NCBI GenBank assembly: GCA_000708835.1
Contig: DF237467.1
Location: 5,770-66,156 of the forward strand
DNA length: 60,387 bases
Reading direction: 5' to 3'
From: Klebsormidium nitens
Taxonomy: Eukaryota > Plantae > Klebsormidiophyceae
The notes under the pieces are model-generated. The model was given only the letters and a program-made list of their open reading frames with translations. It was not told the DNA's origin and did no database searches. Both the position numbers and the translations under genes were made by a program. Within the stretch, counting starts at the first letter, position 1, and the number at the start of each line of letters is the position of its first letter. Positions 35,288 to 58,500 of this stretch are shown one piece after another.

Positions 35288-38200
35288 ATGGTCGACAAAC
35301 TTTTAGATTTCACCCAGCCTTTTGACGTGCCGCTTCTGGACGCGACAGTCCAAGCATTCTACGGCACGGGGTCGAAGGAAGAGGTGAGGCAAGCAGGGGC
35401 CAACTTCAACTTTGATGTTGGTTGGGCCAGTCTTTGTGAAACGGGTTTAGATGATTCGGTGGGCAGGGCTGATGGTTATACGACCATTTTGTATCGGTTC
35501 GTGGTTTGTTCAAGCAAAGACAGAATCCGGCAGGCACCAGTCACTGAAGTGTGCCGTTTTTTAGTGGTGCGAAAACGACATTGAATTGACCAGCTTTCAA
35601 GATCAAAGCAAGCAGATAAGCGGACAGATCTCACTGGAGGTGGTTGCTTTGACAATCGCTGCTCAAGAGGGGACCAGGTGATGGCTTGGGTGGCGTCGGC
35701 CAAACGCTGAGCTAATTTGACCTTGGCAATCGAGCCATTGCTCTTTGAACAGCCTGCTTGGAAGTGCGAGTCAGCGCATTAGTGCCATTCAAGCAGACTC
35801 CAAGCAAGCGTTGCAAACATGTGGCATTTGCTCTCAGGAAGAATCGTATGAAGAATGACATGAATCTGCTCGTAAGCAACTGTGTTGGTTATGGTGGTGA
35901 CTTTCATAGCTCTTGATAGATGCGAAGCGTCAAGGCGGGGATGATTTCTTGTTTGAGCAATCCTGAGTTATAATAGTTGTGTGTCAGGCTACAGAATAAG
36001 CTGGTCTGAAAGTTGAAAAGGTACGCAAGCCTTGACTTGCCCGAGCCGAGGAGATTTGTAAAGACCGGTATATTCTGGGAAACTTCAGAATGAGAGTGGT
36101 GTTCGTCTGGCGACCAGCAATAAATCTCAAGGAGCTCTTGTGTCTTGAAAATCTCCGTTGGTCATGGATTGGAGAAACCGGGTTGCTACTTGTCTTGTGT
36201 TGGATTTAGCATGGGTTTCTGCTTTTCCCCAAGAATGGTTCTCACGAATCGTGCAAAAAGCTGTTTGAGAAGCAAGTATAGTGACGGAAAACACTCGACT
36301 TTGCAAATTCTCTGGTTTGCCAGGGCTACACCGTGGCTCTGAATTCATGTTTGTTCATAAGTAAGGGGATTCTTTTTTGCACTCCTAGAAGATGCTAAGT
36401 AACGTGTTCAGATTCAACTTTGACTTCCTCACATTTTTGAGGAAGCCCAAAGGCCGCTTGTATTAGCAATTGCGGGTTAGGGCATCCTCTCTTCAAAAGG
36501 AAGTCGGAAGTATGTATCAACCAGTTGCTTCAGACCCTGCATCGGCATCTTGAATCAGAATATTAACAGTGCAGGAGTGCAGCGCAAGTCAACAACTCCT
36601 CTTGCGCAACTCAAATGCACCAATTCAGGATTGGCACACTGCCGCAATGAAACAGAAAAGAACCTTCTTGGCCTGCAGAGATCTGCAGCGGAACGGGTTC
36701 TACGACAGTTGCAGGAGCACCCGGATACATGGACCCGGGTGGTGGATATCTTGCAAAAGAGCCAGGTCATCGACTCAAAGTTCTTCGCACTCCAGGTATC
36801 CCTCACAACCTCTGCTTTTCAGCAGCGAACCAGCTCTGCTTAGTGATTTGCTGTATAGTACCACTTCTTCTTGATTATGCAAGTTGCTCCGGGAAATTTT
36901 CGCAACCTTTTTTCCCCCAGTAAGGAGCAGAAATGTCCAAGTAGCCCGTGTCCTTTGGGGCTTGAATCTATAAGAGAGCTTGTTCCGCAAATTTCAAACA
37001 GGTCCTGAGCAAAGTCTTGTTGTCTGTACAGGTGCTCGAGGGAGTCATCAAGTTCAGATGGAACGCTCTGCCGGTGGAACAGAGGGACGGGATAAAGAAC
37101 TATGTGTCAGAGCTCATAGTGCAGGTAAGCATTTCCCCTTCTTCTAGATTCGACAAACCTTCTACTTGCTTTTGCTTCTCTATCGAGTTCGACGAGACTT
37201 CCGCTTGCGCCCATGCCACCTGTCACAAAGGCTATTCTTTCAGCCGCAAATGCTACAGTGTCTGCTTCATTTGGCAGAGAAGATTCTTGATGGACTGCTC
37301 TCGTGTTAGGCATGAAGCAAAAGCCCATGTTGACAGTGGGACACATTTCTACTCTTTGAGCCACGCAGTGTCTTGCTATCTTGGCTAAGCGACTCATACC
37401 CATCGTTTTCTCCCTGCAGTTGTCACGAGAAGAGCCCACATATCGAAGGGAGCGGCTCTACATCAACAAACTGAACATCATACTCGTCCAGGTAAAAGCT
37501 CACGGCTCTTACCTTGTTTGCTAAAGAGTGCCGACACCACACTTGAAGTTTGACATTTTGGCCGAACAAACGTTTGTGCTGCTTCCGGAGGCTCGTTGCT
37601 GGGTAGCCTCTTTCAAAACGATAGTTCAGAGCTGTGTAACCCTCCGCTACATCAAGTAGTTCAGTGGGTCTCTGTGCCGCGCCCTCTTCTCGTGTCACCA
37701 GAGTTTGTTGCTTGGATTTGTCGCATTGGACCAAGGAGCTGGCTGTCACTTGCGCAGGTCTTGAAGCATGAGTGGCCGTCTAAATGGCCGCAGTTCATCC
37801 CCGACCTAGTGGCCGCTGCGAAGAGCAGCGAGACCCTTTGCGAGAATTGCATGGTCATCCTGAAGGTAAAAGCGCCATCAGTATCGGACAGCCGAGCATG
37901 GCTCAGCATCACAGGACCACTTCGGGCCTTGATGTGGGAACTGTAGTGCAGAAGTCCCGTCACTGAGTGTTAGCGTTCGAGTCGAACTCAAATTGATCTT
38001 TCAACCACCTGCCTTTCTGACAAGGGCGACCGACACTTACGATTCCCGACAACTGTCCTCAAGATGAAAGGATGCTTTCTGAAGCGATTGAATCCGACAA
38101 GGGTTTGAGTTGGGGCGGTTGAGGCGCAAGCATTCTGTAGTTGCCAAGGTGCATGGCCGTCTCGAGATGCCTTCAAGCAAACGATTCCTTCAAGCCGAGG

Positions 38201-41200
38201 GTGTGGAGGCATATGCAGGAATTCCAGCCTACTAGCTGCTTCTTTGTTGCACGACGCAAGTGCTTCCGCTACCCCCAGTCTGCGGCCATGATAGTAATGA
38301 TCATGCTTTCTTTCTGCTTGCAGCTTCTGAGCGAGGAGGTCTTCGACTTTTCGCGAGGGGAGCTTACGCAACTCAAAATCAAGGAGCTCAAGAACTCGCT
38401 CAACAGGTGAGTGCCGAGATCCCAACTGCAAGGCTGTCCTGGATCGGACAGGCCTCTCCGAAATTATTGTTTGGTCAAGGAGATTGCAAGGCTGGTAATT
38501 GCCTTTTTGAGATCAACTCTTCCTCAGTACTCAAAGCAGCTTTTCAGCGGGGTTTACATGCCAAAAGCCCAATCACGTATTGGGCGTCACGATTACTCTC
38601 GAAGAAGTGGTTCCGATGAGAGCTCTACTTTTGTACGTTTGTGCGCAGCGAGTTCCAGCGCATCCACGAGCTGTGCATGTACGTGCTGTCGGCGTCCACC
38701 CGGCCGGAGCTCATCCGGGCGACCCTCGCAACGCTGCACGCCTTCCTCTCCTGGATCCCGCTCGGCTACATCTTCGAGTCGAACCTGGTGAGACAGTTGT
38801 GATGAATCAGGTCAGAAAGATGTTGACTTCGATTACTTTCAGCGGTTTGGAATGAGTCGTTCGGCGGCACTTGCAAACGAAAGTTGGACGTTCAAAAGAG
38901 GTGCTTGCTTGGACGAAGCGGAGTACTTTGTCGAGTTCGGTGGTTACGTTTGGAGCAGTCTTGTTGTCCAGACTAAACTCGTACAACTAATTGCAAGTCG
39001 AGTCCCTTACTCCCTCAGTCAAGTACTTTGGTGTCGTAGCAATAACTAGTTACTTTGTCATGCGGAAGTTTCCAATCTGAGGAACCCTGTGCGGAACGTG
39101 ATCATCCTCTATCTTTGGTTGTGCAGCTGGAGATCCTCCTGAAGCTGTTCCCTGCACCCCCCTTTAGAAACCTCACTCTGCAGTGCCTCTCCGAGGTGAG
39201 ACCCGCATCTCAAATTCCTTCACCTTTTCTGGTCATCTGCTCTGCATAGAGTAGCACTAAGCACTAAGCTCAGGATTCAGCGTCTTTGGCACACAAGGCT
39301 CGCTGTGCAATTGTTGGAGCGCTTGCAGACTGCATCATGGGACATCCAGCGTGTGCTTTGATTGGCCTCACTTTAATCAAGTCAGCAACCCCCCCTGGGC
39401 CGTCATTCTTGTCACATTCCGCTTCCCATTATCTGCCTCGATACAGAACAACTTAGCATGAGCGACTGGCGCTCCATTCCAACGCAAAGGGCAAGCAACA
39501 CTGTTGCAACTGACGAGACACCAGACCACTGCTGAGACGATCCAATTCAGACGCAGCCACTCCTGCGTTGTAAAGTGGCACACTTTTTTTGGGTCCGAAA
39601 TCGTTTGGCAAGAGGAGAAATGGATTCTTTCTTGCAGGTGGCGGCCCTGAGTGTGGGCGACTACTACAACGAGCACTTCGTGAAGCTATACACCATTTTC
39701 ATGGCGCAGCTCCAAGGCATCCTGCCCCCCGGGACCGATATCCCAGCTGCATACGCCGCTGGCACGGACGATGAGCAGGTAGACTCTACATCCGTCCGAC
39801 CATCGCTCTCTCGAGAGTGGTGTTTCAAGCCGGCCTGAAGAGTCGGCACCACTAGTTTTCAGACTCCAAGCGGATGTCGACTTGTTTATAGTACGTGCCA
39901 AGTTGTCCGGGATTGGTGCGAGTCATGTAAAGCTCTAGATACGGGTCTATTCGAGCGAGCACCTGAGTTCAGAGTGTCAATCCTGACCGGACAGACTGGC
40001 GCAAAGTGACAGTGGAATAGCTGACCGCAAGTTCAGAATAAGCCCCTGAAGTTCAAAGTTGAGAGTCTGCTTCCGAGCCCAAGTTGTGTTTGACGGTTGT
40101 CTCACGCTTGCTTGTCTCGTTTCTACAGGCCTTCATCCAGAACCTCGCTCTCTTCTTGACCGGCTACTTCAAGGTGAGCCACAAAGTAGCTGCCAACGAG
40201 AGGTTCCGTGGCATCGAGGTTTGAGCACTTGGCACATCAGACCGGGATCCCGTGTGCTTTTGTCATCGTATGTGTTCCGAAGCTTTTGCACGCTTCTGCG
40301 CCTTTCTTTATCAGTCATGTCTTCTCAAGCTCCCACTTGCCTCGTGAAACTGTTCCGCATGGACCCTTTGATGTCAGAAGATGAAACTATCCTCGCTCTT
40401 CAGCGATCCGGAACCCCTTCCTTTTGGATCTTTGGTGACTTACGTCATCACCTGTTCTATTCTGTTCTGCAGTCTCACGTCGCTGTCCTGGAGGTGAACC
40501 CCGAGACGAAGCCAGGCCTCCTCTTGGGCCTCGACTACCTGCTCAGCATCTCATACGTGGAAGACGTGGAGGTCTTCAAGGTATACTGATCTTTGAGTAC
40601 TCTTCCCTTTCTTTGTTCTGACATTGTGTGATGAATATTCGCAGCTCGCTTTGAAGTGTTTGCGCCCTTGTTCCGGGGCTGTCCGTATAATACTAAGAAG
40701 ATTACGTGTAAGTTTCCAACAGCGGTCAGAAGAGGTCCCCAACTTTTGCACACCCGCTTTCTTCGCTTGGCGTGATTGGCACCGCTTCCTGCCTCCCAAT
40801 GCCTTTACATGCTGTCCTGCGAAGAGAACACGTTAGCTGCTGATGCCAACGCCTACCGACCTTGCTATTTACGCAGCAATCTCAAGCCGAAATCCGCCAC
40901 CTTGCGTGAAAACTGACACCACACCTCTTCTCGCAGGTGTGCCTCGACTACTGGAACATCCTGGTGTCAGACCTCTTCCAAACGGAAGCCAATGCGGAGC
41001 CGGCCGCGGCGCCGCTGGGCCTGCACATCCCGGCGGCCAATGGTGCGGGGGGGCAGACGTCGGAGCGCAAAAAGCTGTACTCAGTCCCAATGTCGAAGCT
41101 GCGGCTGTTGTTCATCAGCCGTATGGCCAAGCCGGAAGAGGTGCTGATTGTGGAGGACGAGAACGGGAACATTGTGCGCGAGACGATGAAGGACAACGAC

Positions 41201-44200
41201 GTGCTGGTGCAGTACAAGGTGAGCTCAGAGAACGCTTTTATGATCGGCTCCTACTGCGTCAAAAGTCTCTGCAAAGAAGTCCACCATCTTCACTCTTGCA
41301 ATCACGTGAACTGTGTCAATGGCTTGTTCTGTTTGCTGTTGTGTGCTAGACGTCCGCTGATGCTGCAGGTTGGTCCTAATGCAATCTTCAGATTGTCACT
41401 CACTTCGTGGTCTGGAAAGTGGTTCGAAGACGGTGTGGAAGGGCAAAGGGCTGAAAGGCTAGGACACTTTACAGCAGGAAAAGATGAATCTCCCATCTTT
41501 ATCCAACTATCGACGCTCAACTAACGCTCACTCAAAGTACCCGCGATGATGTGCTGAAAGCTTCGGCTCTTGCCCTTGCAGATTATGAGGGAGACGCTTA
41601 TCTACCTCTCGCATCTTGACCACGAGGACACGGAGCAACAGGTGAGGTTCTAATACGCAACGGGATCGGTTCTATGCAGACACGTGGTTTTCGGTCTTCT
41701 TGCTTTACGCATCTCTTTTGCACTTTCGCAGTCAGTCTGGATAAACCCATCAGCATCGTTTTGAATTTGCACACATAGTGTAGAAGTTCGCTCTCACCAG
41801 ATTGGTTGAAGAAGCTATCGTAAGACTCTGACGGCTTCATCAATAGTGAAGAGAAGCCGTTCTTGAGCAATGGATATCAGACCTGGTGACAGACTGTACA
41901 TCTGTGAATCGGAGGAGCGAGCGTGCATTTTGCTGTCTTTCCATGCTCGAAGGCTGGACTAGAGCGAAACAAAGCTCAACACCATTTGCATTGGGAAACA
42001 AGAGATCTCGACGGCAAGAAAGCCGCTACTCGTCATCCTAACTTTGCGGCGGGAAAACCTGTTCATGTCATGACGTGTCTACGGATCTACGACTTCGCCC
42101 TTTGTCACACGCAGATGCTGAAGAAGCTGGCCCTGCAACTGAACGGCAAGGAGTGGTCCTGGAACAACCTCAACACGCTCTGCTGGGCCATCGGATCCAT
42201 CTCGGGGTCCATGCAAGAAGACCAGGTGCGGCGAAACCAGCGTCCAAAGGTTAAAAAGGACCTTTCTTCTTAGTATGTCAACCTAGGTACCTCTACGAGC
42301 TTCTGATCGAGCTTAGATTGGATCGGGGCGTCATAGGCAGCTCTTTATGGACAATAAGGTCCTCCATCCTATACTCCGTTTGGCCAGGGCGGCTCAATTG
42401 TTGCTCAATAGCTGGGCCGTAGACTTCACATTCGGGTTACTTGGACTGGTATCTGCCGTCTAAATTGAAAATTGAAACAGTCGTCCTCAGTTGCAGGCCC
42501 AAATTTGAATCTGGAGGCTCTGGCAGGGCTGTTGAGGTCTGGCAGTACTTCAATGCTGACACGCACAGTTTTACTGGTGCAGGAGAACCGGTTCCTGGTG
42601 ACCGTCATTCGAGACCTCCTCAGCCTGGTGGAAATCACCCGGGGCAAGGCCCACAAGGCCGTCATCGCCAGCAACATCATGTAAGCCGCGGCCGGCTCTC
42701 ATCCTGAACGGAAAGTCACTATCGTGTGTATTAGAAATTGATGCGACTGAGTGTTCAGGCAGCTGGATTTTAGCCCTGCAGCACGCATGAGAGCTCAAGT
42801 TCGCAAAGCGTACTTGAGACAATGTTACACGTGTCAGACGACCTTGATGGAACGTTGTTGGAGGGGGTCCTTCTTTCTGCAGATTGGCCTCTTCTCTCGC
42901 AGTCTTTAGAGACTGATCGTGTGGGCAATAATGGTTTAGCCTCCGTATCGATCAGCCTATTCAATGCTCTTCTCTTCCAGGGCACTTCAATGTTATCTTT
43001 GAGTCAGTTCGTAGCCCAAAAGGTCAAAAACTATGTAGCCTTTGCTTTCAAAAATCAGCCCAATCTAAGGACGCTCACTGAACTTCTCGCTTGGAAAACT
43101 TGTGCCGTGCAGGTACGTGGTGGGCCAGTACCCCCGCTTCCTGCGCGCCCACTGGAAGTTCCTCAAGACGGTCGTCAACAAGCTCTTCGAGTTCATGCAT
43201 GAAACGCACCCCGGAGTGCAGGTGCGCCCATCGGTTCCACTTGTCACCGTCTCCCTTCTTTCCTTCTTTCTGGACTTTCTGCAGGAAATATAGCAGGTAT
43301 TGTACAAGGCAGATATGCATGCTAGCCTTGGGCTGTGTGCTCGGTTTCCCTGTGCCACACTCGGTGCGGTCAGAAAGTTTTTTTCGTTGATTCAGACCGT
43401 GCGTTCGGTTGCATTGCTGGATGTGAGGACTTTGAGCAAACGGCTCGGCGTTTGACTATGGGCCTGTCTGACTCGTTTTCATTGTTTAGATGAGACCCAG
43501 AGCCGCAAAGATATTGAAGACGATCATCTGTCCTGACGGCGCAGTTGCTCACTCTTGCAGGACATGGCATGCGAGACGTTTCTGAAGATTGTCCAGAAGT
43601 GCCGACGAAAGTTCGTCATACAACAAGTGAGATTACGTTTGTTCTTTGTATCCACGCCTCCCTTTCTCTTATAGCGACATCTCGTGCTTCTATGTCTGAC
43701 CGTCCCTTTTCGATTGACAACAGAGCGGCGACGGATGTGTGGTGATATCTGGTCCATATACAACTTTTTCAAGTCAAGTCTTGATCCCATAGCAGCCAAG
43801 ACTTACAGTAGCTCTGTCACCAAACTGCCAACCTCTGGGGCTTCTCTTCGGACTTCCGAAACCTCTTGCCTTCTTTCCAGGTTTTATATCAAAAGGTCGA
43901 GTTATTGCTTCAATTCCGCTATTGTAGTTGAGCAGACGGCAGCTTACAAAAGCATCCATATTATTGGCAGGCATTTCCTCGTTTCAAAAACGGATGATTC
44001 TTTTAAATAACGGCTCATTGGTTCAAGTGGGTTCCAATCATGTGGCTGGCTTGTCTAGGTGGGTGAAGCCGAGCCGTTCATCTGCGAGCTGCTGCGCGGG
44101 CTGGCGACGACCATTCTGGACCTTCAGCCGCACCAAATACACATGTTCTACGAGTCGGTAAGGCTGCTGGTCGGGTTGGCATCCGCGCGTATTCGGCAAA

Positions 44201-47200
44201 TGCGTGGATTACACGAGTCGAGTTCGAACATCTACCAGAGCTTTACAGCTTCAGACGAATAGGGACAAAGCTTTTTCAGTCCCACGGAAAGAGACAACGT
44301 TATTTGCTGCATAAGGGTGTCTTGTCTTGTTTCAGCTGAGGAAGCCGCTCTTTCTGCTATGGTGTCCAGATTACGAAGCCCTTGTGTCGTACTTTGCAGG
44401 TGGGATACATGATCCAAGCGGAAACTGAAAAGCAGAAACAGATTGAGTACCTACAGAAGCTCATGGAGCTACCAAACGCGGTGAGCATCGAGACACTGTC
44501 AGTTCTGCCGATTATTACTGTCAGCAGTCTTTTGCAGTATCGTTTTTATCGCCACCAAGGTTGGCGGAGAGGTAAAGCCTCTATCATAGGACGCTGGGAA
44601 AGTCAGCCAAGGCGACTGCCGTGCTCGGATGAACAACGCTTCATCTCGTCATTGAAGCGGTTCAAAAAGTTATTAAGGCCCCGGATGTGCGTTGATAGAA
44701 GCCGGCCATCACAAAAGAAAGCGTCAGCTCTCTTGAGCTGTCCCTTAATTCTCTTTTCCGTCCTCATCTTCTCTCGGTTCGGCTGTAACTCTGCTGCAAC
44801 AAAGGCACGAGACCTTAGCGGAGCATGGCAGAGCGTGCTCAAGCTTTAAGACACGCAGCTTGATCACGTCGATCATCTCCAGAAGATGTTTATGCAAAAT
44901 CCTGTTCAAACTCTCCTGGAGACACCGGTGTCACTTTCTCAATCTCCACGCAACTCCACTGCAGGTTGGAACAAGATCATAGCGCAGGCACTGCAGAGCG
45001 TGAACGCTTTTAGTTCCACACCTCAACACATTAGTCGAGCTTTAGAAATTTAGAAACGTTACCCGTATTCCCGGGTTAACACACTCCCCCTCTTTGGGGA
45101 CACCCTAACGAATTCCTGCGCCTTTTTGCTGCAGCGGTGGAACGAGATCATGGCGCAGGCGCAGCAGAGCGTGGACACGCTGAAGAACCCCGAGACGGCG
45201 CGCGCGATCCTGAACATTCTGCAGCCCAACGTGAGCGTGGCCAGCGCGCTCGGGCAGCCCTTCATCAGCCAGCTCTCCGGCATCTACCTCAACATGCTCA
45301 ACATCTACAGGTGGGTCCCCACCCTCCCTGCCCTGGTAACAGTTTAGTTACAGTTTTTTTAGTGGCCTCACAACTTGCCACCCCAGTTTCAGCTTTGAGT
45401 TGCGGTCCAAAATCTTGATCCGTCGCAACTCATTCAACAACCATGGGACTGTGGAAATCAAAAACTTTGCTCTGAGCTGTGCTAATCTGAGAGCACCAGT
45501 TCTGAAGGTCTTCCTCATCCTTCTGGGTGTTTAGAACGGGTTTGTTTCGAGAACGGATTCTGACAGAGCAGATAATGCACTGCTGGGATCTTTTTTGGCA
45601 GGTGATGCGAGATTCGTCTTCCTTTGGTCCGCTTTCTTACGCTTCTGAAAGACGCCTGTCAAATTGCTCAATGGAAGTCCGTTTTATGAACCATCTGGGG
45701 TGAGAGAAGGTCGCCTTCAGTGCAAACCATGTTCAACGACCACTTGTCACTCCCATTTTGGCAGGCTCGGATCGCTCTGTGTCGAATTGGTCGCATAACA
45801 CTTTCTCTTGAGTGCAGAATGTATAGCGAGATCATCTCCAGCAGCATCGCGGAAGGAGGCCCTTACGCTTCCAAGACATCCGTGGTCAAGCTCCTCCGGT
45901 GAGACTTGCCTCTCTGCTAGTTTGCCTCCCGTAGGTCTTGCCATCTCTCAAAGTCATCTATAGTCGGATAAAATGAACGAATCATTTATCAACGTTTCGG
46001 GTCAATTACGTTCCATTCCGGAGCTTTGTTGGTCAGACGGGAGCGACTGTGAGAAGTCTTCTTTTGAGGACGGTGTCTAAAATGCTGGAGATTTGTTTTC
46101 AGGACCACAGGCTTTTTGCCATGACCTGCTATAAGTACAAACTGTTTTGTTGCAATAACCTGGCATAATCACAGACTGTTTCGTTGCTACAACCTACCAT
46201 AAGCACAGACTGTTCCGTTTGCTATCATTTGCCATGACCACAGACTCATTCGTTACCAGAACCTGGCATAATCACCGACTGTTTCGTTGCTATAACCTGC
46301 TAAAACCACAGACTGGTTCGCTGCCAGGTCCGTGAAGCGCGAGACGCTGCGGCTGATAGAGACGTTCGTGGAGAAGGCGGAGGACACGGAAATCATCGCC
46401 AAGCAATTTGTGCCTGCCATGCTAGACCCCATCCTAGGGGACTACGCGCGCAACGTGCCGGACGCACGGGAATCGGAAGTGCTGTCCCTATTCGCCGCCA
46501 TCATAAATAAGTGAGCTCTTGATTACAGACGTTCCTCCTTTAGTTGGTTGCTCCTCATGCCCTTTTCTTCTGCTGTTCCCTCCGTCACCAGTTGAAGTCA
46601 CCTGTTCAGTTCTGTGGGAACGAGCAAAACGGGTGCTGACAATGTTCGTAGCATAGATGCCAAAGTTCCACCTCTTCCCACGAGGTTTTCGAGGGGACCT
46701 GTGTCCGCATCCGTCTTAGTAGCTGCTGGCTGTCGGAGGACCTGCTAGCGAAGGCCTCCAGCTTTTAATCGACAGTTTTTCGGCTAGCGGTGCCTTGCTA
46801 TCCTGCTTAGGCAATCCGCTGTCGGTATCACCGCATATGCTGTTTTGGAGAGCATTTGTCGCCCTTTTTATTGCAGTTCGTTAAGCTTCGCATCATTCTC
46901 ATTTGATTGCAGATTGAAGGAAGCCATGCTGGACGAGGTGCCCCGGATCTTCGAGGCCGTCTTCGAGTGCACGCTGGATGTGAGTACCCACTTTGCAACC
47001 TGAGCTTTGCACCGCCTTTCGAGTTTGAGGCGCCGTTCAAGTATCCCTTCACGGCATGCACACGTACGCAAGGAAAAGCTGTCTGGAACCAGTCAGCAAA
47101 GTTACCTAACATAACAAACGTAACTAGTCCGTTCGTAAGCCCGTGTCTCGTGTCAAAACCGTGCCTGAATACAAAAGCAACATACTCCTCCTTTCGGGGA

Positions 47201-50200
47201 CATAAGTCGTGAGCGATTCCTCTCTCCCTTTTTGGTGGGCATCAGTGGGTGTTAAGCGCGACTTTAGATGCCCTTCCATTACAAAGCAGTAGCCTACACA
47301 TCGGACAATTCTGGAACCCCCTTGCCTGGCAGGACATCCTCCGTTTGCAGTTGATGTCACTGATGATACCCCCCTCCCTCTTAGCGAGGCTGACCACTAC
47401 TTACCTGCGCCTTCGTGCAGATGATCACCAAGAACTTCGAGGACTACCCCGACCACCGGCTCAAGTTCTTCTCGCTGCTGCGCGCCATCAACAGCCACTG
47501 CTTCCGGGCGCTCTTCAGCCTCTCCAACCAAGTGAGTTGGGCGCTCGGTTAACGCGGGCGTCGGCATTTCATGGATGCACTCGGTTTTCGTTGACGGCAT
47601 CACTACTGCTTCTAAGCTTCGGCGCGGTTGCAATTTTGAAGTTTGAACTAGCATATGTTTGGATGCAGTCGGTCAACTTAGTCACACAGATTCAGGGTGG
47701 AGTATCGTGTGCGGTGAGAGCTGCGCTTCCGTGGGGTTTGAAACGGCTTCCCTTCGCTTGAGTTGGAAGGACCCACACGGAGTCCAAAAAGCACCTACTG
47801 CGTCAACGCCTTGGACCGGTAAAGTAAAACTGCAGAGAAGAGGTAGAGAGTGCCCATAAGCAGCGATGAATCAAAGGGGTTCCAAGCAGTTTCTATCAAG
47901 TCGCCCCTGCCGGCGCGCCGACCAGCGAGCATCGATGATAGTAAGGCGTTGAACCAGATCTTAAAAAGGTCGTATCCGCTGATCCAGCGGCTTGGTTCGA
48001 CGGCTCATCTTCGCTCCTCGCGTTGCAGCAACTGAAGCTGGTGATGGATTCCATCGTGTGGGCGTTCCGGCACACGGAGCGCAACGTGGCGGAGACGGGG
48101 CTCAACCTGCTGCTGGAGATGCTGGGCAACTTCCAGGTCAGCCACTGCCGCTTTCAAGCGGTCTCGGTCTACTAATTGTTGGTTTCGCTACGCCCTTTTG
48201 TGTTGGTGGGATGGCGATCGCGGATCAAACAGGCGGTTTGGCGATTTCAATGTTTTTCAGCCGAGACGGGGCTGAATCTCCTGCTGGAAATGCTGGACAA
48301 CTTCCAAGTCAGCCGCCGCCGTCCGTCAGGCTGCCGCCGTCAAAGCGGTCTTGTCGTAACACAATCTGGACGGTGCTGCGCCTTTTGGTCTGAGTGGGTT
48401 GGTGTTTGGGGTATGAACGGATTAGGAGCGTGGTTTAAGCATCAGATCGTTCGCGTTTGACGATCTAATCCTTCGATAGTGCTGAACGAAGGCTCACCCT
48501 TCTGCCGGACCTCATCCATTTGAACTGCAACTACCAAAGTAGATGTCCTCTGCACTGAAGACACGTCTTACTTTGGATCAGTGACGTGAGCGGGCTTTAT
48601 TCGAACACCTTTCCTGCTTACAAGTAAAGTTTATTGCTCGGACTGCTGTGGATTACACTATTGTGAAGTTGACCCGCTTGCTGGTTTTGTCTCGAATGGC
48701 TGGAAACAAGACCTGACGAAACGACTCGCTTGTAACCTTTTGCCGTATTGGCGCCGTTTTCGGCCGGTGTTTCGTTGGTCAAAGTATCTTCTCCTTGGGA
48801 GCATCCATCATTTCGACTTTCTTCTGTCTCCCTTTTCATCCTGCAAGGGAGATTGACTGGAACTGGGCTCTCTTTTCATCATGCAAGCGAGAATGATTGA
48901 ACCGCGCTTTTGAGAGGCATCGAGGATGAGATAGTTATCCTTGCGCTTCGACTGGGGCTCCGGCCTCGATGAAGACAAGAAATAACACCAGACTGCTAAT
49001 CCTGGTACTGAGATGCCGCCTTGCGCTTGTCAGACGTTTGCTTTTGTTGGTTTGGCTCCTCTATCCCTGTTGCATCGTTTTTCGGGTTTTTGACACGCAC
49101 CACAAGTCCGTGTCGTCGGCCTCTGAAGAGAACTCCTGTTGCCGCTTCCAGCTAAAATCCCACTCGGTATTGAATCGTTGCTGTGATTAGAATCCTCTTC
49201 CTTGTTTCGCAGGGGTCGGAGTTCGTGAACGCGTTCCACCAGACGTACTTCCTCACGATTTTGCAAGAGATCTTTGCGGTCCTCACCGACACCTTCCACA
49301 AGCCCGGCTTCAAGCTGCACACCGCCATCCTGCAGCACCTCTTCTGCCTCGTGAGCCCACCTCACCTTCCTTGTTTCTTTTTGTCCTAGAAAACCAAACC
49401 TCAAGGCCTATCCCCAGTGCAGCAATGCTTACTTGATCCTCATCGTCCTGAAACTCTTCGATACGGCACGGTTTGTCTATCGTACCACCGTTATGTTGGC
49501 GTCTTCTACATGGTTCTGTCGGAGCCCATCAGTTGATACTTTCTCGTCAAGCAATCAAAGATCGGGCTGAAGGAGCGAAGGCCCACAAGGGGTGTTAGCC
49601 AGTACCGTGGCTTGCCCTGCTCTAGACTTTCCCTGACCACCTTGCGCGTTAACGCCTCCCACCGCTATGTTGCAGCAATTTTCGGCAACCCCTTGTTTTT
49701 GAAGTCCTGGTGCTGCTTGGTGTGACACAAAGCGCTGGAATCCTCACCCGGCCGTTCCTTCGAGGAGTAAAATTTTGACGTTCTTCCTGTCGACGTTTGG
49801 CGGTCGTTTATATTTCGTTTATATTTGGAAAATCGGGGACAGGTTGTCGAGATCCGCAGTGAGCCCAACTGAATGTCTCTTTCACGGTTTGTTTTTGTAC
49901 GAGCTGACATTGTCCTGTTGCTTCGGCAGGTGGACTCGGGCACTTTGACGGCCCCTCTGTGGGACGTGTCCACGCTCGGCCCTGCCGCATACCCCAACAA
50001 CCCGGCGTTCGTCCGAGACTATACCATCAAGCTGCTGAGCACGTCCTTCCCGAATTTGGCAAGCGCGGAGGTACGGAAATGTTCCTCAGTCCGGCGTTTC
50101 TTCCTTCGCGCTCATGTCAGACGTTGTTCCATCTGGTGCTATTGCAGTTCTGCCTCCGAAGTTGAGAAGGCGTCGCAAGCTTTGGCATGCTTGCTGGGTT

Positions 50201-50591
50201 TAGACAAATAATGATCTGACTAATGGGGCTCTTGCGTCGCTTTTCTTATCGTCTGACAGTATTGTTCCGGGAACTGCTTGCAATAAGGGCAGTTGCCCGA
50301 CGTTCACTGCTCAGCACACTTGACAAAGCAGAGACCTGAAAAAGCCTTCTTGTATCTATACAGGTGGCGGCGTTCGTGAGCGGGCTGTTTGAGTTCAAGA
50401 ACGACACGACGGCGTTCAAGAACCACCTGCGCGACTTCCTGGTCCAGTCTAAGGGCTTCTCCTCCCAGGACAACAAGGACCTGTACGCGGAAGAGGCGGC
50501 CGCGCAGCGCGAGGCCGAGCGCCAGAGGATGCTCAGCATCCCGGGACTGATCGCGCCAAACGAAATTCAAGACGACGGGATGAAGGATTGA
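35288..50591 (+). CDS. XPO1: Exportin-1 / CRM1 nuclear export receptor, 28 exons, 1069 aa
   Basis: Exons 35288-35383, 36679-36795, 37032-37124, 37420-37491, 37758-37865, 38324-38406, 38649-38787, 39127-39195, 39638-39778, 40129-40173, 40473-40580, 40937-41218, 41582-41641, 42115-42225, 42583-42680, 43113-43221, 43561-43626, 44059-44157, 44400-44480, 45135-45310, 45818-45898, 46328-46510, 46913-46979, 47421-47531, 48029-48136, 49213-49350, 49930-50070, 50364-50591 (3210 nt). Colinear with plant XPO1, e.g. [57 protein letters not shown]. Confidence 0.97.
44959..45008 (+). repeat. Decayed partial copy of the XPO1 exon 20 acceptor and 5' end, in intron 19
   Basis: ctgcag-gttggaacaagatcatagcgcaggcactgcagagcgtgaacgct versus the true junction ctgcagcggtggaacgagatcatggcgcaggcgcagcagagcgtggacacgct (45129-45181). 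Confidence 0.85.
46103..46327 (+). repeat. About 34-bp minisatellite (about 6.5 units) in XPO1 intron 21, ending in the 3' splice site
   Basis: Consensus tcacagactgtttcgttgctataacctggcataa. The last unit, ccacagactggttcgctgccag, supplies the acceptor of exon 22. Confidence 0.9.
48260..48314 (+). repeat. Duplicate of the 3' part of XPO1 exon 25 plus donor, in intron 25
   Basis: gccgagacggggctgaatctcctgctggaaatgctggacaacttccaa|gtcagcc versus gcggagacggggctcaacctgctgctggagatgctgggcaacttccag|gtcagcc (48089-48143). Confidence 0.9.
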
Positions 50592-52596
50592 GGACGGGGA
50601 GGTGCGGCGAGATTTTGTGGGTATTGGAAGAGAGTGGTTGTTGCAGGGGGACGGTGGTTACTGGTGTCAAACTGTTAAACGAGAATGTGGTGCTGTATAC
50701 TTGGTCGGGGAGTTTATGATACGAGGAGGCCTTGCCGTGAAGTTCGAGCCGGTGAAGCATGTTCTGAGGTCCTAACTTCGAGGGCTGCTCATCAGTTTTT
50801 ATGAGTTCGTGGTCGAAAGCAGTGATTAGGGGTACGCCCAGCTCCTGGGGACTTACCCATCATCGTCTATAAGCTAGCAAGAGCGGCTTAGGACTGGTCC
50901 ATTCGCGACAAGCTAGTTGGTCGTGCTCTTGTGAGCGGGCAGAAACGCCAACCGACACCATCATTGGCCGGTTGGTATCAAAGTCTGCTAGGCGCCTAAG
51001 TGCTCTTGTCTAATTTCGGTCTAGCTGAATCTTTTCGAAGTGTAGAGTCATCTTTGAATTGGAGCTTGGTCACACCAATGTGGTCAAGCTGGTCAAGTAG
51101 TGACTTCACCTGAATCGACTTTTGAAATTCCTCGATAGGTGGTCCGGTCAAGTGTAGCTTTGAATCGGGAGGGCGATAGGATTGCTATCAAACTTGAACA
51201 AAGTAAATTGCTCATGTGAAGCAGTCTTTCATATTGCATACATATGTGTCTTCTTTTGTATCCAACTTCCTGCACGATTTTGCCATGCTTTGCTTGAGGT
51301 TCAAACCATTCTCAACAAAATCGCTCTGCAACGCTAGCTCCACTTCATCCTATACCATGAGCCATCTTAGTTTCGTGAATGTTTTCTGGTAGATTTTTGA
51401 TACAACAAATGGTATATGTATCAACATCACTAACTTCTATATTAGAAGGTGCAATGATACATTCGTTTATTGCTATTTGCTTCGAACTTGGCACCGCCCG
51501 CCAGCTGAGATCGCGAAACGCGCAATTTCCGATATGATTATAATCATTTGAGACATGATTACCTTATCCAACGAGCTCGGGTGCAAACATTGAAATTTGT
51601 ATTCGTGCTCTTGGCCGCGGCGGCGTGGCCTTCAGGAGAAAGGTGCCGGATCCGAATGGTGGATCATGCAGTGTGCAAAGTTATCCGCCGTAAAGCTCTA
51701 CATGATGCGCCTTTACGCACACGCTGCGCCATCGTACACGACCAACCTACTCCTACTCACCTACCGCCGCGGGGCACGACGGTGACCTGCCTGAAGACCC
51801 TACTATGTCTCCAAGCTAGAATTTCGAATTAAGCACCCATGTTCGTAGATTTTTGCTAAGGTTTGTCATTTGTGCAAGCTATAGCATGTTAGGGCATATC
51901 AGGTGATCAGGCATAAAATGTTATCCAATAAAGGTAGGCCATAACGAGTAGGAAGTGCATGTAGGTACTTGCCGCCAGTGGTAGAGTACCTAGCTTTTCT
52001 AATCAAACGTTCAGACTCGCAACAAAGTGTGTACTCGCTCTCAGGTCCGTGGCTCACGCTACGGCCTAATATAAAAGAAGCATACCGGTACATCTGACGG
52101 CGACGGTAGGTTCAAAACCTTTATCCTCATCGACGACCATCATTGCAGATATTTATCGAAGTGCGATCTTGTAAAATCCATGGCGAGAGATTCAGGCGCA
52201 GATGGGCGCAGATCGACGGTTTGAACGGGAGCCATGGAGCCACAAAAGTCATCGAGCGCCCAAAGACACGGACAACGACGATCGGACGGTGCAGCTTTTG
52301 CGAGGCATCCATGTGGCTTTACGACTGGCACTTGGTGCTGGGCACTCTTGAGTCACGACTCACAGCCTTCACTGCTTCAGGCTGCTCGTTGCTGCTCAGT
52401 GCACTGATCATGCGTTGTGTCAAGACTCCAAAGGGCAGCATTGCAAGCCCAAAAGCGACCTCAAAGCCCCTCGAAAAGTGAGCTGAGCAGCGGCCATTTT
52501 CTGGACGGAAAAGTTGTTTTCCTTTCACAGATCTCCGGTGGGAAATACAAAGCTGCAGTCAGGGGGCTTTATTGGTGCTGTCAAAGCCCTGCAAAG

Positions 52597-55500
52597 ATGG
52601 CTGCTTCCATGTCCCTCGTAAGGGGCACGTGTGCGCCAAGTGCAGCGCTCGCCCCAAAACTTTCGGCGTGCTCATCAGCAAAGGCAGGGGTCTCCCTCCT
52701 GCCCGCAGTGGGCTTTCTTGTTCCCCCCCGCTCTGTGGGCAGTAGTTTCCTTGCGGGCGATGCCGACCTGTCGTCTGTGAGGAAAATGTGCCGGAACGCG
52801 GGCCGGGGGGGGGCGCTTCAGGCGCAGGCCGTGGCCGAGTTTGTGGAGACGAGAGAGCCGTTGAATGGAACGCTGCGCAAAGTGACCCTGCCCTACAGCG
52901 AGGACGATTCCGAGCTGGAGAATGGGCGGGAGTCGGACTACGAGGAGGTTGAGACGGAGAGCGAGCCTGAGTTGGCTGCCACTGACATCCGGAACTTCGA
53001 CCTCTCAAAAGAGACGGTTCGGGCGTTGCAGGCCCGCGGGATTGAGAACCTGTTTGCCATTCAGGTAAGGAATGCAGCCACCCTTGTGTAAGATGGGTTG
53101 CAAATGTGGTGGTGACCATTACCGGTCGAATCTTGCCTTGTAGCCCGTTTGAAGCTCCTTCTTACTTTCAGGAAGTGGTTCTAGCAATAGCAATGCTGGC
53201 CTGAAGCCGTGTGGTAATGGTGACCAAAGATCTGCAATGTACTTCTGATTCACTTATCTTACCCTGGGTAAAATGAGTTTTTCTTTTCAACTTCAAGTGT
53301 TTTCTGGACTATCTTTCAAGGACGAGGATAATGAAATAGTTTGCCGTGTGCCTTTTCAACGTCGGAGTCGTCGTGGTTATTTGCGAGGGGCCATCTTTCT
53401 TCTCTGCTATATGGGCGCCTTTTCTGAAGTATGCGGTTATCGCATTTTGAAACCCAGTTCAGGTATTCTGTGTTCAGTACGGTCCTGTGAAGCTGTCATT
53501 GCAGCTGCTTAGTCAATGCCGAAAGCCTTTCCCGTAAATTGTTATGTAGGTTGTATCTTCACATTTGTTGAAAGATCTGCCTTTTCTTCATAGACCGTTT
53601 TTTTGGACCCAAGGGTCTGCTCCTGGGCGCATTCGGTTCAATTTTGAGGTTAGGGTTGGGAACTAATATGGGTGGGTTTGGACCTCGGTGTTTGTGGTGT
53701 ACTACTGGACATAACAAAACTGTGTTCCTGACTTGAGTTGTGGCTTTGTCTTCAGTGCGCCGTCATTCAGCCCGCCATGGCTGGGCGTGACATCATCGCC
53801 CGTGCACGGACGGGTACTGGAAAGACGCTCGCTTTTGGGCTGCCCATCATAGAAAAGCTTCTGGCCGCAAGAGCAGAGAATGGGGCATCCATGAGAGGGT
53901 GAGTGACCTCAAGCCACTTTTGTTTCAATAGTTATCTCTGACCAGCACTCAGAGTTCTAGGAGGGGGCGAAACAACGAGGGAGGTGCTTTGGAGAGCAGG
54001 TTGTGAGTTTGAAAGTAGTAGCTGATGCTTTGCTGGAGGTTGACCCTCGTTCATTGCTTCTTGAAGCTGTCCTAGACTAAAGAGCTGTCCTAAACGAATA
54101 AGCGGCTTCCAAGTGAGGGAGGTGTAAAAGTCAATGCCGGCACTCGCCTGGCGCACAAACGTGGATTTAGGGTTCAGTTTAGGGTTCACATGTTTGCCAC
54201 AATGCTGACATTCCTGACTCCACGCTTTGCAGGAGAGCTGGCCGCCTGCCCAAGTGTTTGGTGATGGCTCCAACTAGAGAGCTGGCAAAGCAGGTCGAGA
54301 AGGAGTTCATGGAATCTGCACCAAGTAAGCAGCGGAAACTTTCTTTTCCATCTTTCAAAGTTGTTCATTTTGTTTCTAACTAATTGGCTCTGGAGCGTCC
54401 CACATTATCCGTCGTGTCCTCATCTCTGTAAAGTGCACAAGCTTTGCTGTGATCCTCATCCGGCTCTCTTGTATTTGTATGCCTGTACCCACCAACTTTT
54501 GATGCCTCAAGACAAGCAACCCAGAAGTTCCTCACTGACGTCAACTCCTTTTTACACTTGCAGGCCTGCAGACGGTGTGTGTGTACGGTGGTGCTCCCAT
54601 CTCCGGTCAGGAGCGCACCCTTCGGCGGGGGGTAGATGTGGCTGTTGGCACGCCAGGGCGTATCATGGATCTGATGGAGCGGGGGGCGCTGGACTTGCAG
54701 GAGGTTCGCTACATGGTTTTGGACGAGGCAGACCAGGTGAGTGGAGCCTAGTTGTTCATCGTATTTTGCTGGTTGCTAACAGACTTGCTTAGGGTTTGAG
54801 CCTTTGGTAAAGCGAGCCAAGGGGGGTGGTATTATTAGCCCAACTTTCATGCTGCTCAATAAAGAGCTCAACGCTGCGATCGAGTGAAGAGGAGCTTTAC
54901 GCTGCAATCGTGTGAAGAGACCAGATTGTCTGGAAAGCTATTTTCATCTGGGCTGCAGGCGGTCAATCAAAGATGGGCTTTGAACCCTAGCTAAGTTGCA
55001 AAAAAGATGGGGATACTACATATTCATCGGGCCGAGCTTGCTTGTTCCCCCAATCAGAAGCATGGTCATGTTTTTACCCCAACTTTAAAATCATGATCTG
55101 CAGGGTTGCTCGCTTTTTCAGAAGCGCCTCCTTCGGTTACTTTTCCAGGACCCACTCCCTGTATGCCTCAAGCAGTGCCCATCTGGAGTCACCTCAGTCA
55201 GAGATTCCACTCATTGCTTATCCTCCTTCACTGCAGATGCTGAACGTCGGGTTCGAGGAAGCGGTGGAGCACATTTTGCGCAACTGCCCTGTGGAGCAGC
55301 GCCAGAGCATGCTCTTCTCCGCCACCATGCCCACGTGGGTGCGGCGTCTCTCGCGCAAGTACCTCAACAATCCGGAAGTCATTGACCTGGTCGGAGATGA
55401 CGACGCAAAGATCCCCGAGGGCTTGAAGATCATGGCGGTGCAGGTGCCGAGGAACGCCAAGCGCAACGTGCTGATTGACCTTATTACGGTGAGGGAGTAC

Positions 55501-58500
55501 CTGAATCGCGACAGAAGCAGGGTCAGAGCAGACGGTGGGTGTTTCACCAAGAAAACATGATACATTTGAACGGAAGAACGGAAGGCGCAGTTGGGGCTTT
55601 GGGCCGCACAGAGAAAGTCGAGTCAATGGGCAACTGTGCGAACCCTAACTGAGCTTAGGGTTTGTTTTCGGGCGTGCGAATCAGGATTGCCCCTTGCGAG
55701 TCTGCTTGCTTGGATGCGTTAATTTGCAGCTTGTGCTGCGTTCTATGCCGGTCAACCACTCCGCTTGTTCACTTGCACTCTGGTGTATTTGAGCTTCCCC
55801 AGCAATCTCTGATTCTGAATTATACCGTTGACGTCGGTCATGCCGTCTTTATCAATCAAGTCTCAGGGCGTCACTTCCAGGATCCAGTATAGTTTCTTCA
55901 ACCGGTGGATGTTGTGCTTGTGTTCAATATGCTCCATGTCTTTCTCTTGCAGGTGCATGGTCGCGGTCGGCGGACGATTGTTTTTGGGCAGACTAAGCGC
56001 GACGTGGACGACATTGCGGTGCTTCTGAGCCGCACGCACAACGCAGAGGCGCTTCACGGAGACATTGCGCAGTCGCAGAGGGAGAAGAGTCTGCAGGGAT
56101 TCAGAGATGGGAGGTTTAAGGTGCTCGTGGCCACTGACGTGGCGTCGCGCGGGCTCGATATTCCCGACGTCGACTTGGTAAGTCGCGCATTTGGTTGCGA
56201 TCAGTTTCTTCGTGTTGTTTTCAAGTCTAGGAAAGCTGATTGGGGTCGCGAGCAGTCCGTTTATGCTGATTTTCATGTCTAGGAAAGCTTATTGGGTGGT
56301 TGGGATCTGGTGACCTGAGGCCTTGCAAAGGCAACCCCGAAAAGAAGTCGCTGCAGTCACTTTGGGGATCTTGGCTTGTTCCAACACATGGGAGAGATCT
56401 ATTGTTGCCTGTGACGTGTGTAACCGTGCTTCGTGTTGATCCGGCCTTGCTCCCTGCCAGGTTATTCATTACGAGCTGCCCAATGACACCGAGACCTTTG
56501 TCCACCGGTCGGGCCGGACTGGGCGTGCGGGCAAGGACGGCATTGCCATTGCGATGTACGCTGCCCCGGAGAGGCGCATGATGTCGCGCCTCGCAGCCGC
56601 CTGCGGAAAGGACTTCGTCAACATTCAACCGCCTAACCCCTCCGTAAGCCTCCTTGCCCTGGATTCGGGTCTTTGCATCACGATTGGGTGGACTAATACT
56701 TCCAATTCTGAAGGGTCAAGAAGATTGTCATGTCAATGGTTCTAGCAGCCCGGGGATTAAATATCCCCTCACCATTTTTCATTCCCGCTCACTAATCTCA
56801 CATTCCCGCTCACTAATCTCAATTTTCGCGTTGAATTTTGTCTCAGGTTGCTTCAATCTGTCCACTGTCCAGGATCGCGATTTGGTTGTTCCTTGAGACT
56901 GCTAGGGCCCTGTGACAAAACACGTCCGTCCTTACAAAGTAGGACTTGTGCTACCCCTCATTGGAAGCCCGTCCGCTGGCAGGTTCAGTGCGCCCCTCTC
57001 ATCCTCCTGTTGACTGGCTGCATCGACCTCCTTTATCAACCATCCCTCAACCTGAAGCCTCCCTGTGACAGCTTTATTGCGCTCCTCTCATATTCTCCTG
57101 TCAATCGGCCACATCAACCCCCGTCTTCAATCATCCCTCATCTTCAGAATCCCCTTTCTTGCAGGATGTGTTGAACGCCGCTGGCCAGCAGGCACTGGAG
57201 ATGCTGGAGGGCGTTGATGCTGAGCTGTACCCGCACTTCTTCCCCGCAGCAGAGCAGCTCATCGCGGAGCGTGGGCCGCTCAACGCTGTTGCGTCTGCGC
57301 TGGCGGCGATCAGCGGGTTCCGGGAGCCGCCCAAGCCCAAGTCGCTGCTGACCTTCGAAGAGGTGAGGGGCAGAAGCAAAAGGTCTGGGCGTTGTGTCAA
57401 ACTTTGGGTGCTTAGAGAAGGTTAGGGGGAGGTGGGCGTGGGCCAACACCTGTGCTGAGTGGTTCGAAACGAGAGGGTGTTGCTGGACCTGGATGGTAGA
57501 GAGGGGCTGTGTATTCTGTTTCTGAGGAGCCGTTATGGTCCGGAGTAGGAGCTCTGGTTGCGGAGTGTGCCTTCTTTGGCTCGCTTAGAGGGGTAGGGAG
57601 TGCGAAAGACCCTACATGTTTGTTGTGCTGTTGGTCGACCCTGGATCATGCATTCGGCAGATTCACGTGCACTTACTTTTGCCGACATAGTTTCAAGCCA
57701 GACACGAGGTAAGGCTCTGCCGGAACAGCAAGATGAGGTTCAGAGTGAAGGCAGTAGCCCTTGGCGACATACGGGAAGAAGTGGGAGGTCTTACGCTTCT
57801 CTGTGGAACGGTTCCCTGATATTATTCGCCCTTTTCTCTGCAGGGCTGGACCACCCTGCAGGTCGTGCGCTCTGCTAGCGGTCGTGGCCCAATCGTCTCC
57901 CCGCGCAACGTGCAAGCGCTCCTCGGGTCAGTCGGGCAGCAGTTCGCGGACAACGTAGGAAAGATCCGGCTCATTAGCGACCGGGACGTCGACGGGGCGG
58001 TGTTCGACCTGCCCACCAAATTGGCAAAGAGGCTAGTCGAGATCAAGGAAGCGGAAGGGGACTATTTCGACGAAGTACAACAGCTGCCGAGGCTGGTTGA
58101 GGAGTTCCGGGGGGGAGATATGGGCGGTCGGGGCGGAAGTCGGGGAGGCTACGGAAGGGGGGGCGGTGGCGGCGGATATAGGGAGAGGTCGGGGTAAGTG
58201 TTTCTGTATTCTTTGCATCCCCTCTGTCCGTTTGTCTCTTACTGATAGGTACACCTTCTGCGGAGAAAAGAAGGGCCGCGATTTGGACAGGAGCACCCTG
58301 CGTGCCTCGTTCTCATTGTCATTCCTCGTTCATCTAGGTTGGCTTGAAGAATCATCTGAAACCCCTTCTTCTCTTCTCAGCTCCCGTTGCTTTTCGTCTT
58401 CGGGGCTGCAGTTTCATCTCTGTGGATGTCTGAAGCAGTGCTGCTTTTCAGTGGGTTCGTGTGACGTCGGGTACTGGCTCGTGATGAGAACATACATAAA

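Follow-up and report, generated by a model that had tools for sequence, protein, structure and literature searches.

The exportin-1 (XPO1/CRM1) of the streptophyte alga Klebsormidium nitens carries a valine at the position of human Cys528, so that a non-thiol residue occupies the site targeted by leptomycin B within a NES groove that is otherwise intact. The gene is encoded in a window of 60,387 nucleotides (assembly GCA_000708835.1, contig DF237467.1, positions 5,770 to 66,156 of the forward strand), and all coordinates given below without a contig name are positions within this whole stretch. Considering gene model, transcripts, phylogeny and structural comparison together, we find that the protein is probably an ordinary NES exporter which cannot be alkylated at Val524 and which is predicted to be insensitive to the inhibitors that act there.

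The exon chain was obtained from tblastn matches with the XPO1 of Riccia and with other green-lineage XPO1 proteins, followed by a search for exon junctions (Table 1). The model agrees with spliced RNA contigs at ten GT..AG junctions between 40580 and 45818, and its translation is identical, letter for letter, to GAQ89407.1 ("exportin 1 [Klebsormidium nitens]"; A0A1Y1IL98; P0392 in our protein set). This entry was returned by a region-restricted search with the XPO1 of Botryococcus as the query, in which it ranks fourth; the K. nitens protein is already correctly named in public databases. Its precomputed Pfam annotation comprises IBN_N, Xpo1, CRM1 repeats 1-3 and CRM1_C, the architecture of exportin-1/CRM1 in the karyopherin-beta family, and individual exons match CRM1_repeat_2, CRM1_repeat_3 and CRM1_C. 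The peptide of exon 16 is, from 43114 on, identical to that of one green-algal XPO1 (P0118). A preliminary description of this DNA had recognized exon 15 of an exportin-1, an assignment confirmed by the 28-exon model and by the identity to GAQ89407.1.

Table 1. Coordinates of the exportin-1 coding region of K. nitens, of the exons around the NES groove and of the altered codons in exon 15.
Feature	Positions	Strand	Description
Exportin-1 (XPO1/CRM1) coding region	35288..50588	+	28 exons, 1069 codons; introns all GT..AG
Exon 14	42115..42225	+	HEAT 10B to the start of HEAT 11; RNA joints 41641 to 42115 and 42225 to 42583; tblastn
Exon 15	42583..42680	+	Residues 509-541: NES-groove helix H11A, turn, first half of H11B
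Exon 16	43113..43221	+	Remaining H11B and helix H12A; RNA joint 42680 to 43113; tblastn
Ser522 codon AGC	42622..42624	+	Human Gly526 column; Asn in other green plants
Val524 codon GTG	42628..42630	+	Human Cys528 / S. cerevisiae Thr539 column
Ala531-His532 codons GCC CAC	42649..42654	+	Human Asp535-Asn536 columns; first turn of H11B

Two further features of the window were observed outside the groove exons. Intron 25 contains a 62-nt copy (48260-48321) of the 3' end of exon 25 and its donor (48089-48150), which is 85% identical to the original, is preceded by AG and would introduce an in-frame stop if included; this copy is a relic or possibly a poison exon. Downstream of XPO1, at about 52400-56300 on the forward strand, lies a multi-exon gene whose stop-free stretches contain DEAD-box helicase-like motifs (GTGKT, a DEAD-like VLDEAD, SAT and HGD) and whose N-terminal region is long and presequence-like.

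Exon 15 is bounded by a cag acceptor and a gtaagc donor, and it encodes 32 complete residues and a last Met, the codon of which is split as AT and G over the junction. These 33 residues align without gaps to residues 513-545 of human CRM1 (phmmer, PDB chains), which places the GTG codon onto Cys528 and upholds the earlier reading of a valine at the leptomycin-B cysteine. The nucleophilic cysteine of this H11A column is absent from K. nitens in DNA and RNA contigs alike. Over a 130-residue stretch of the groove, the differences from bryophyte and zygnematophyte XPO1 proteins consist only of scattered variable positions and of the clustered Ser522, Val524, Ala531 and His532; the rest of the stretch is nearly invariant from fungi to plants. 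Judging from the alignment, only the changes from Asn to Ser522, from Cys to Val524 and from Asp to Ala531, all within ten residues, appear to be lineage-specific in Klebsormidium. His532, in the Asn536 column, is probably the ancestral state because it is common to Chlorokybus, Mesostigma and marine prasinophytes. The preliminary description had treated KAHK as a double change from KDNK in which a normally conserved Asp-Asn pair was lost. The Ala-His pair is indeed present, but only the replacement of Asp by Ala is unusual, and the pair is less conserved than stated: Asp-His occurs in 30 of the best 80 metagenome loci as well as in Chlorokybus and Mesostigma, two streptophytes which branch just below Klebsormidium and which combine it with the cysteine.

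A sequencing or assembly artefact is a practically negligible explanation for Val and Ala-His, given that Logan contigs from four runs of four studies (one DNA run and three RNA studies, 2015, 2022 and 2024; compared over 40500-45900) have no differing letters in exon 15 and that three further, synonymously diverged metagenome contigs encode the same peptide. The RNA contigs show both joints of exon 15 with GT..AG boundaries, and RNA and DNA contigs keep GTG, not TGC, at the critical codon. The metagenome contigs include two complete Klebsormidium-like XPO1 genes with different introns (L002 and L003, JGI sample 3300060284) and a copy from a sister sample (L004). In L002 and L003 exon 15 has 12-15 synonymous and no non-synonymous differences from K. 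nitens, and in this comparison valine is encoded by GTC as opposed to GTG. Two base substitutions are required to turn Cys into Val, and the earlier view that a single sequencing error is unlikely is borne out by the contigs of the four runs and by the metagenome genes. Between themselves, L002 and L003 differ at three synonymous sites of exon 15 and in their introns, and both carry Val and Ala-His; they may represent two species, two haplotypes or two paralogues.

The K. nitens protein is 80% identical to the XPO1 of Riccia and other bryophytes. A quick maximum-likelihood tree calculated from 33 XPO1 proteins recovers it as the sister of Zygnematophyceae plus embryophytes (SH-aLRT 100%), above Chlorokybus and Mesostigma, on a branch of 0.18 compared with a median of 0.21. 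Comparison with L002 and L003 over 1032 codons yielded dS of 0.86-0.87, dN of 0.013-0.015 and dN/dS of about 0.016, and Val, Ala and His are kept in these genes. Since the three residues persist at this synonymous divergence under very strong purifying selection, they are long-standing and fixed in an essential gene. Among the 120 best hits obtained with the Botryococcus query, GAQ89407.1 is the only one from K. nitens. The survey for a second, Cys-type XPO1 that had been recommended earlier therefore returned none within these 120 protein hits, and sensitive tblastn revealed no second or relic Cys-type exon in the introns of the K. nitens window or in L002 and L003.

The thiol at the Cys528 column is the point at which leptomycin B, ratjadone-type polyketides and SINE drugs attach, by Michael addition. 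Covalent inhibitors need a reactive cysteine, and yeast CRM1 was engineered to carry T539C for inhibitor crystallography (PMC7938638); the substitution C528S makes cells resistant to SINE, even in the heterozygous state (PMC5356594). We examined the position of the altered residues in an AF2 model of residues 430-660 (mean pLDDT 87.7), in which helices span residues 506-526 (H11A) and 530-545 (H11B) and are connected by a Thr-Arg-Gly turn at 527-529. Val524 is located near the end of H11A and Ala531-His532 in the first turn of H11B; the model agrees with the published limits of H11A, yeast 529-540 (bioRxiv 10.1101/2020.08.05.237479). The protein is the housekeeping exportin-1 of K. nitens: it is expressed and full-length, it is orthologous to plant XPO1 and human CRM1, and it is strongly constrained. 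We infer that it performs the usual RanGTP-dependent export of NES cargo. With no thiol at Val524, the side chain at this position cannot be alkylated, and intrinsic insensitivity to leptomycin B, ratjadone-type compounds and SINE is predicted. This is the resistance to covalent inhibitors that the preliminary description had expected from a Cys-less groove, and by analogy with the engineered and mutant proteins cited above the expectation seems well founded. Non-covalent inhibition, or reaction with another cysteine of K. nitens exportin-1, may nevertheless occur; plumbagin and oridonin attack other cysteines of yeast CRM1 too (bioRxiv 10.1101/2020.08.05.237479). Our literature search returned no paper on leptomycin B with Klebsormidium or Chlamydomonas and no drug or export assay for Klebsormidium.

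In order to place these residues in a broader context we examined their distribution in a library of 1.84 billion proteins. Among the 150 best of 281 matches, the inhibitor column is occupied by Cys in 129, Val in 12 and Thr in 8; in the same 150 the 535-536 pair is Asp-Asn in 130 and Asp-His in 8, and Ala-His is found only in two Klebsormidium-like fragments. Full-length plant and green-algal matches combine Cys with Asp-Asn in 116 of 119 cases. When the exon alignment was used as the query against metagenomes, the best 80 loci, many of them marine, all had the cysteine; none of them was another gene of the Val/Ala-His type, and none contained tandem exons. Threonine is present in 49 of 115 fungal-type matches (for example in Lipomyces, Dothideomycetes and Cryptococcus), and valine in Fomitiporia, Pyrrhoderma and Phellopilus of the Hymenochaetales. 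Within green algae, Thr is found in Auxenochlorella and Ostreobium quekettii, and Val in a trebouxiophyte Logan transcript (P0432) and in a metagenome contig (L088). Chlorella A99, the sister of Auxenochlorella, has Cys, and the tree implies at least four independent losses of the cysteine in Viridiplantae. A cysteine-less CRM1 is therefore common overall, not rare, and the phenomenon was already known from fungi; apart from K. nitens, we found no streptophyte in which the sole copy of the exon lacks the cysteine.

Cysteine and non-cysteine versions of the same region were also observed side by side in several lineages. A trebouxiophyte XPO1 (L001:9950-10375; ENA ERZ25067493 ctg171477), closest to that of Myrmecia bisecta at about 74%, contains the H11A-encoding exon twice in tandem, as copies of 186 nt that are separated by 54 nt. 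Both are equivalents of a fused exon 14-15 and have AG/GT boundaries and the same phase; the first encodes Val and the second Cys. A second contig (L089:5950-6378) has the same tandem arrangement with only synonymous differences within the exons. The two copies are candidates for mutually exclusive exons. Myrmecia bisecta and Elliptochloris each have a single Cys exon and no second copy, and the literature search returned no paper on mutually exclusive exons in exportin-1.

Among Zygnematophyceae, the annotated XPO1 proteins of Spirogloea muscicola (three homeologues, P0160, P0161 and P0162) and Mesotaenium endlicherianum (P0402) include a second, diverged copy of the exon, which comes about 12 residues after the Cys-type peptide in Spirogloea and follows it directly in Mesotaenium. 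In the second copy, which is conserved between the two genera, Ser occupies the Cys column, Lys replaces Glu529 and the 535-536 pair is Asp-His. It is probably an old alternative exon that was read through by gene predictors. This Ser-type second exon was not found at the Closterium and Riccia loci. Closterium sp. Naga37s-1 has a near-identical duplicate of the 3' half of the Cys-type exon with its donor about 80 nt downstream (L090:6322-6373), which reflects a recent tandem duplication of part of this same exon. The wood-decay fungus Phellopilus nigrolimitatus encodes two CRM1 genes on one contig (L007, JAJOHG010000005.1) that are 91% identical, one with Cys and one with Val at the inhibitor column (P0320/P0347). 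In the jellyfish Rhopilema esculentum, a predicted protein of 1431 aa (P0158) contains the groove region twice, in identical form and 333 residues apart; this doubling is probably an artefact of assembly or annotation.

Why the cysteine was replaced in Klebsormidium is a separate question. A near-neutral replacement at a structurally tolerant position of the groove, with drug insensitivity as its by-product, is a real possibility to which we assign somewhat less than an even chance. In its favour, functional CRM1 proteins naturally carry Ser, Thr or Val at this site and the remaining groove of K. nitens is unchanged. However, the cysteine has been held by the great majority of lineages for more than one billion years, which means that the column cannot vary freely; in addition, three lineage-specific changes fall inside ten residues of an otherwise invariant stretch, and duplicates with and without the cysteine recur in other lineages.

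Adaptive drug-proofing, in which selection was imposed by electrophilic export inhibitors of soil actinomycetes and myxobacteria or by other environmental electrophiles, is on balance unlikely for Klebsormidium, and its support is circumstantial. It is consistent with the repeated loss of the cysteine in sampled green algae (at least four independent events, comprising V in Klebsormidium, T in Auxenochlorella, T in Ostreobium and V in the trebouxiophyte transcript), with the many fungi that lack it as well, and with the retention of both states in the trebouxiophyte (tandem Val/Cys), in Spirogloea and Mesotaenium (Cys/Ser) and in Phellopilus (Cys/Val). The uniform presence of Cys in the best 80 metagenome loci, many of them marine, points in the same direction, and a single resistant allele suffices for resistance (PMC5356594). 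However, land plants and most terrestrial algae have kept the cysteine, the tolerance of the site for Ser, Thr and Val leaves room for neutral replacement, and the alternative use of the duplicated exons is itself a candidate only.

It is very unlikely that the specificity for NES cargo has changed or that the gene is a specialised paralogue with a role of its own. Where H11B begins, beside the lysines of the groove, Ala531 replaces an Asp that hardly ever varies, and near the central hydrophobic pockets Val takes up more space than Cys, both of which could affect NES binding; the literature search found no mention of a role for Asp535/Asn536. On the other hand, the suggestion of a specialised paralog in the preliminary description is not supported, because the protein is a canonical orthologue by its position in the species tree, its ordinary branch length, its dN/dS of about 0.016 and its status as the lone K. 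nitens entry in the best 120 hits. The idea of an altered NES specificity, put forward in the same place, appears weakened because helix H12A, including the selectivity filter Lys568 (PMC5358978), is identical to that of human CRM1.

Looking beyond Klebsormidium, we tentatively suggest that the column of the leptomycin-B cysteine has come under selection repeatedly in green algae and fungi, where a non-thiol version has been fixed or kept beside a Cys version, although we regard this as doubtful at present. If it were true, it would imply an arms race with electrophilic export inhibitors or a redox control of nuclear export. The Klebsormidium protein and the duplicates of other lineages together make it testable whether the cysteine is retained for a function such as the sensing of redox state or electrophiles, and whether toxins drive its loss. 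The duplicates with and without the cysteine, which recur, are a more novel lead than the Klebsormidium protein itself, which is of moderate evolutionary interest as a streptophyte example of a cysteine-less exportin-1 and of practical interest for work on this alga. Leptomycin B and SINE compounds are standard probes of CRM1-dependent export, and Klebsormidium is becoming a model for the algal origins of land plants. Such probes are predicted to be ineffective in Klebsormidium, where only the introduction of a V524C allele would open the pathway to these drugs.

Among the known systems, the XPO1 of plants (Arabidopsis XPO1A/B and bryophytes) is orthologous to the K. nitens protein: the full-length sequences are 76-80% identical, the Pfam architecture is shared and the HEAT 11-12 groove is almost the same; the plant proteins have Asn-Leu-Cys and Asp-Asn where K. 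nitens has Ser-Leu-Val and Ala-His. Human and mouse CRM1 (3GB8, 3GJX), the target of leptomycin B and selinexor, align without gaps to residues 470-620 of the K. nitens protein (HEAT 10-12; E about 1e-71). The identity to human CRM1 in H12A extends over WKFLK...MHETH, whereas the alkylated Cys528 and Asp535-Asn536 of the human protein correspond to Val and Ala-His in K. nitens. A parallel is found in the cysteine-less CRM1 proteins of fungi, in which a non-nucleophilic residue occupies the same column of an otherwise conserved groove: Thr539 in S. cerevisiae (PMC7938638), Thr in Chaetomium (4FGV) and Cryptococcus, and Val in Fomitiporia, Pyrrhoderma and Phellopilus. Within this group, experiments have demonstrated drug insensitivity for yeast only. 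Unlike K. nitens, these fungal proteins keep Asp-Asn, and as they belong to a different kingdom the changes are independent of those in Klebsormidium. The cysteine-less XPO1 proteins of green algae (Auxenochlorella, Ostreobium, P0432 and L088) are changed at the same column, again independently but within Viridiplantae; all of them are from chlorophytes and have kept Asp at the 535 column, in contrast to the Ala of K. nitens.
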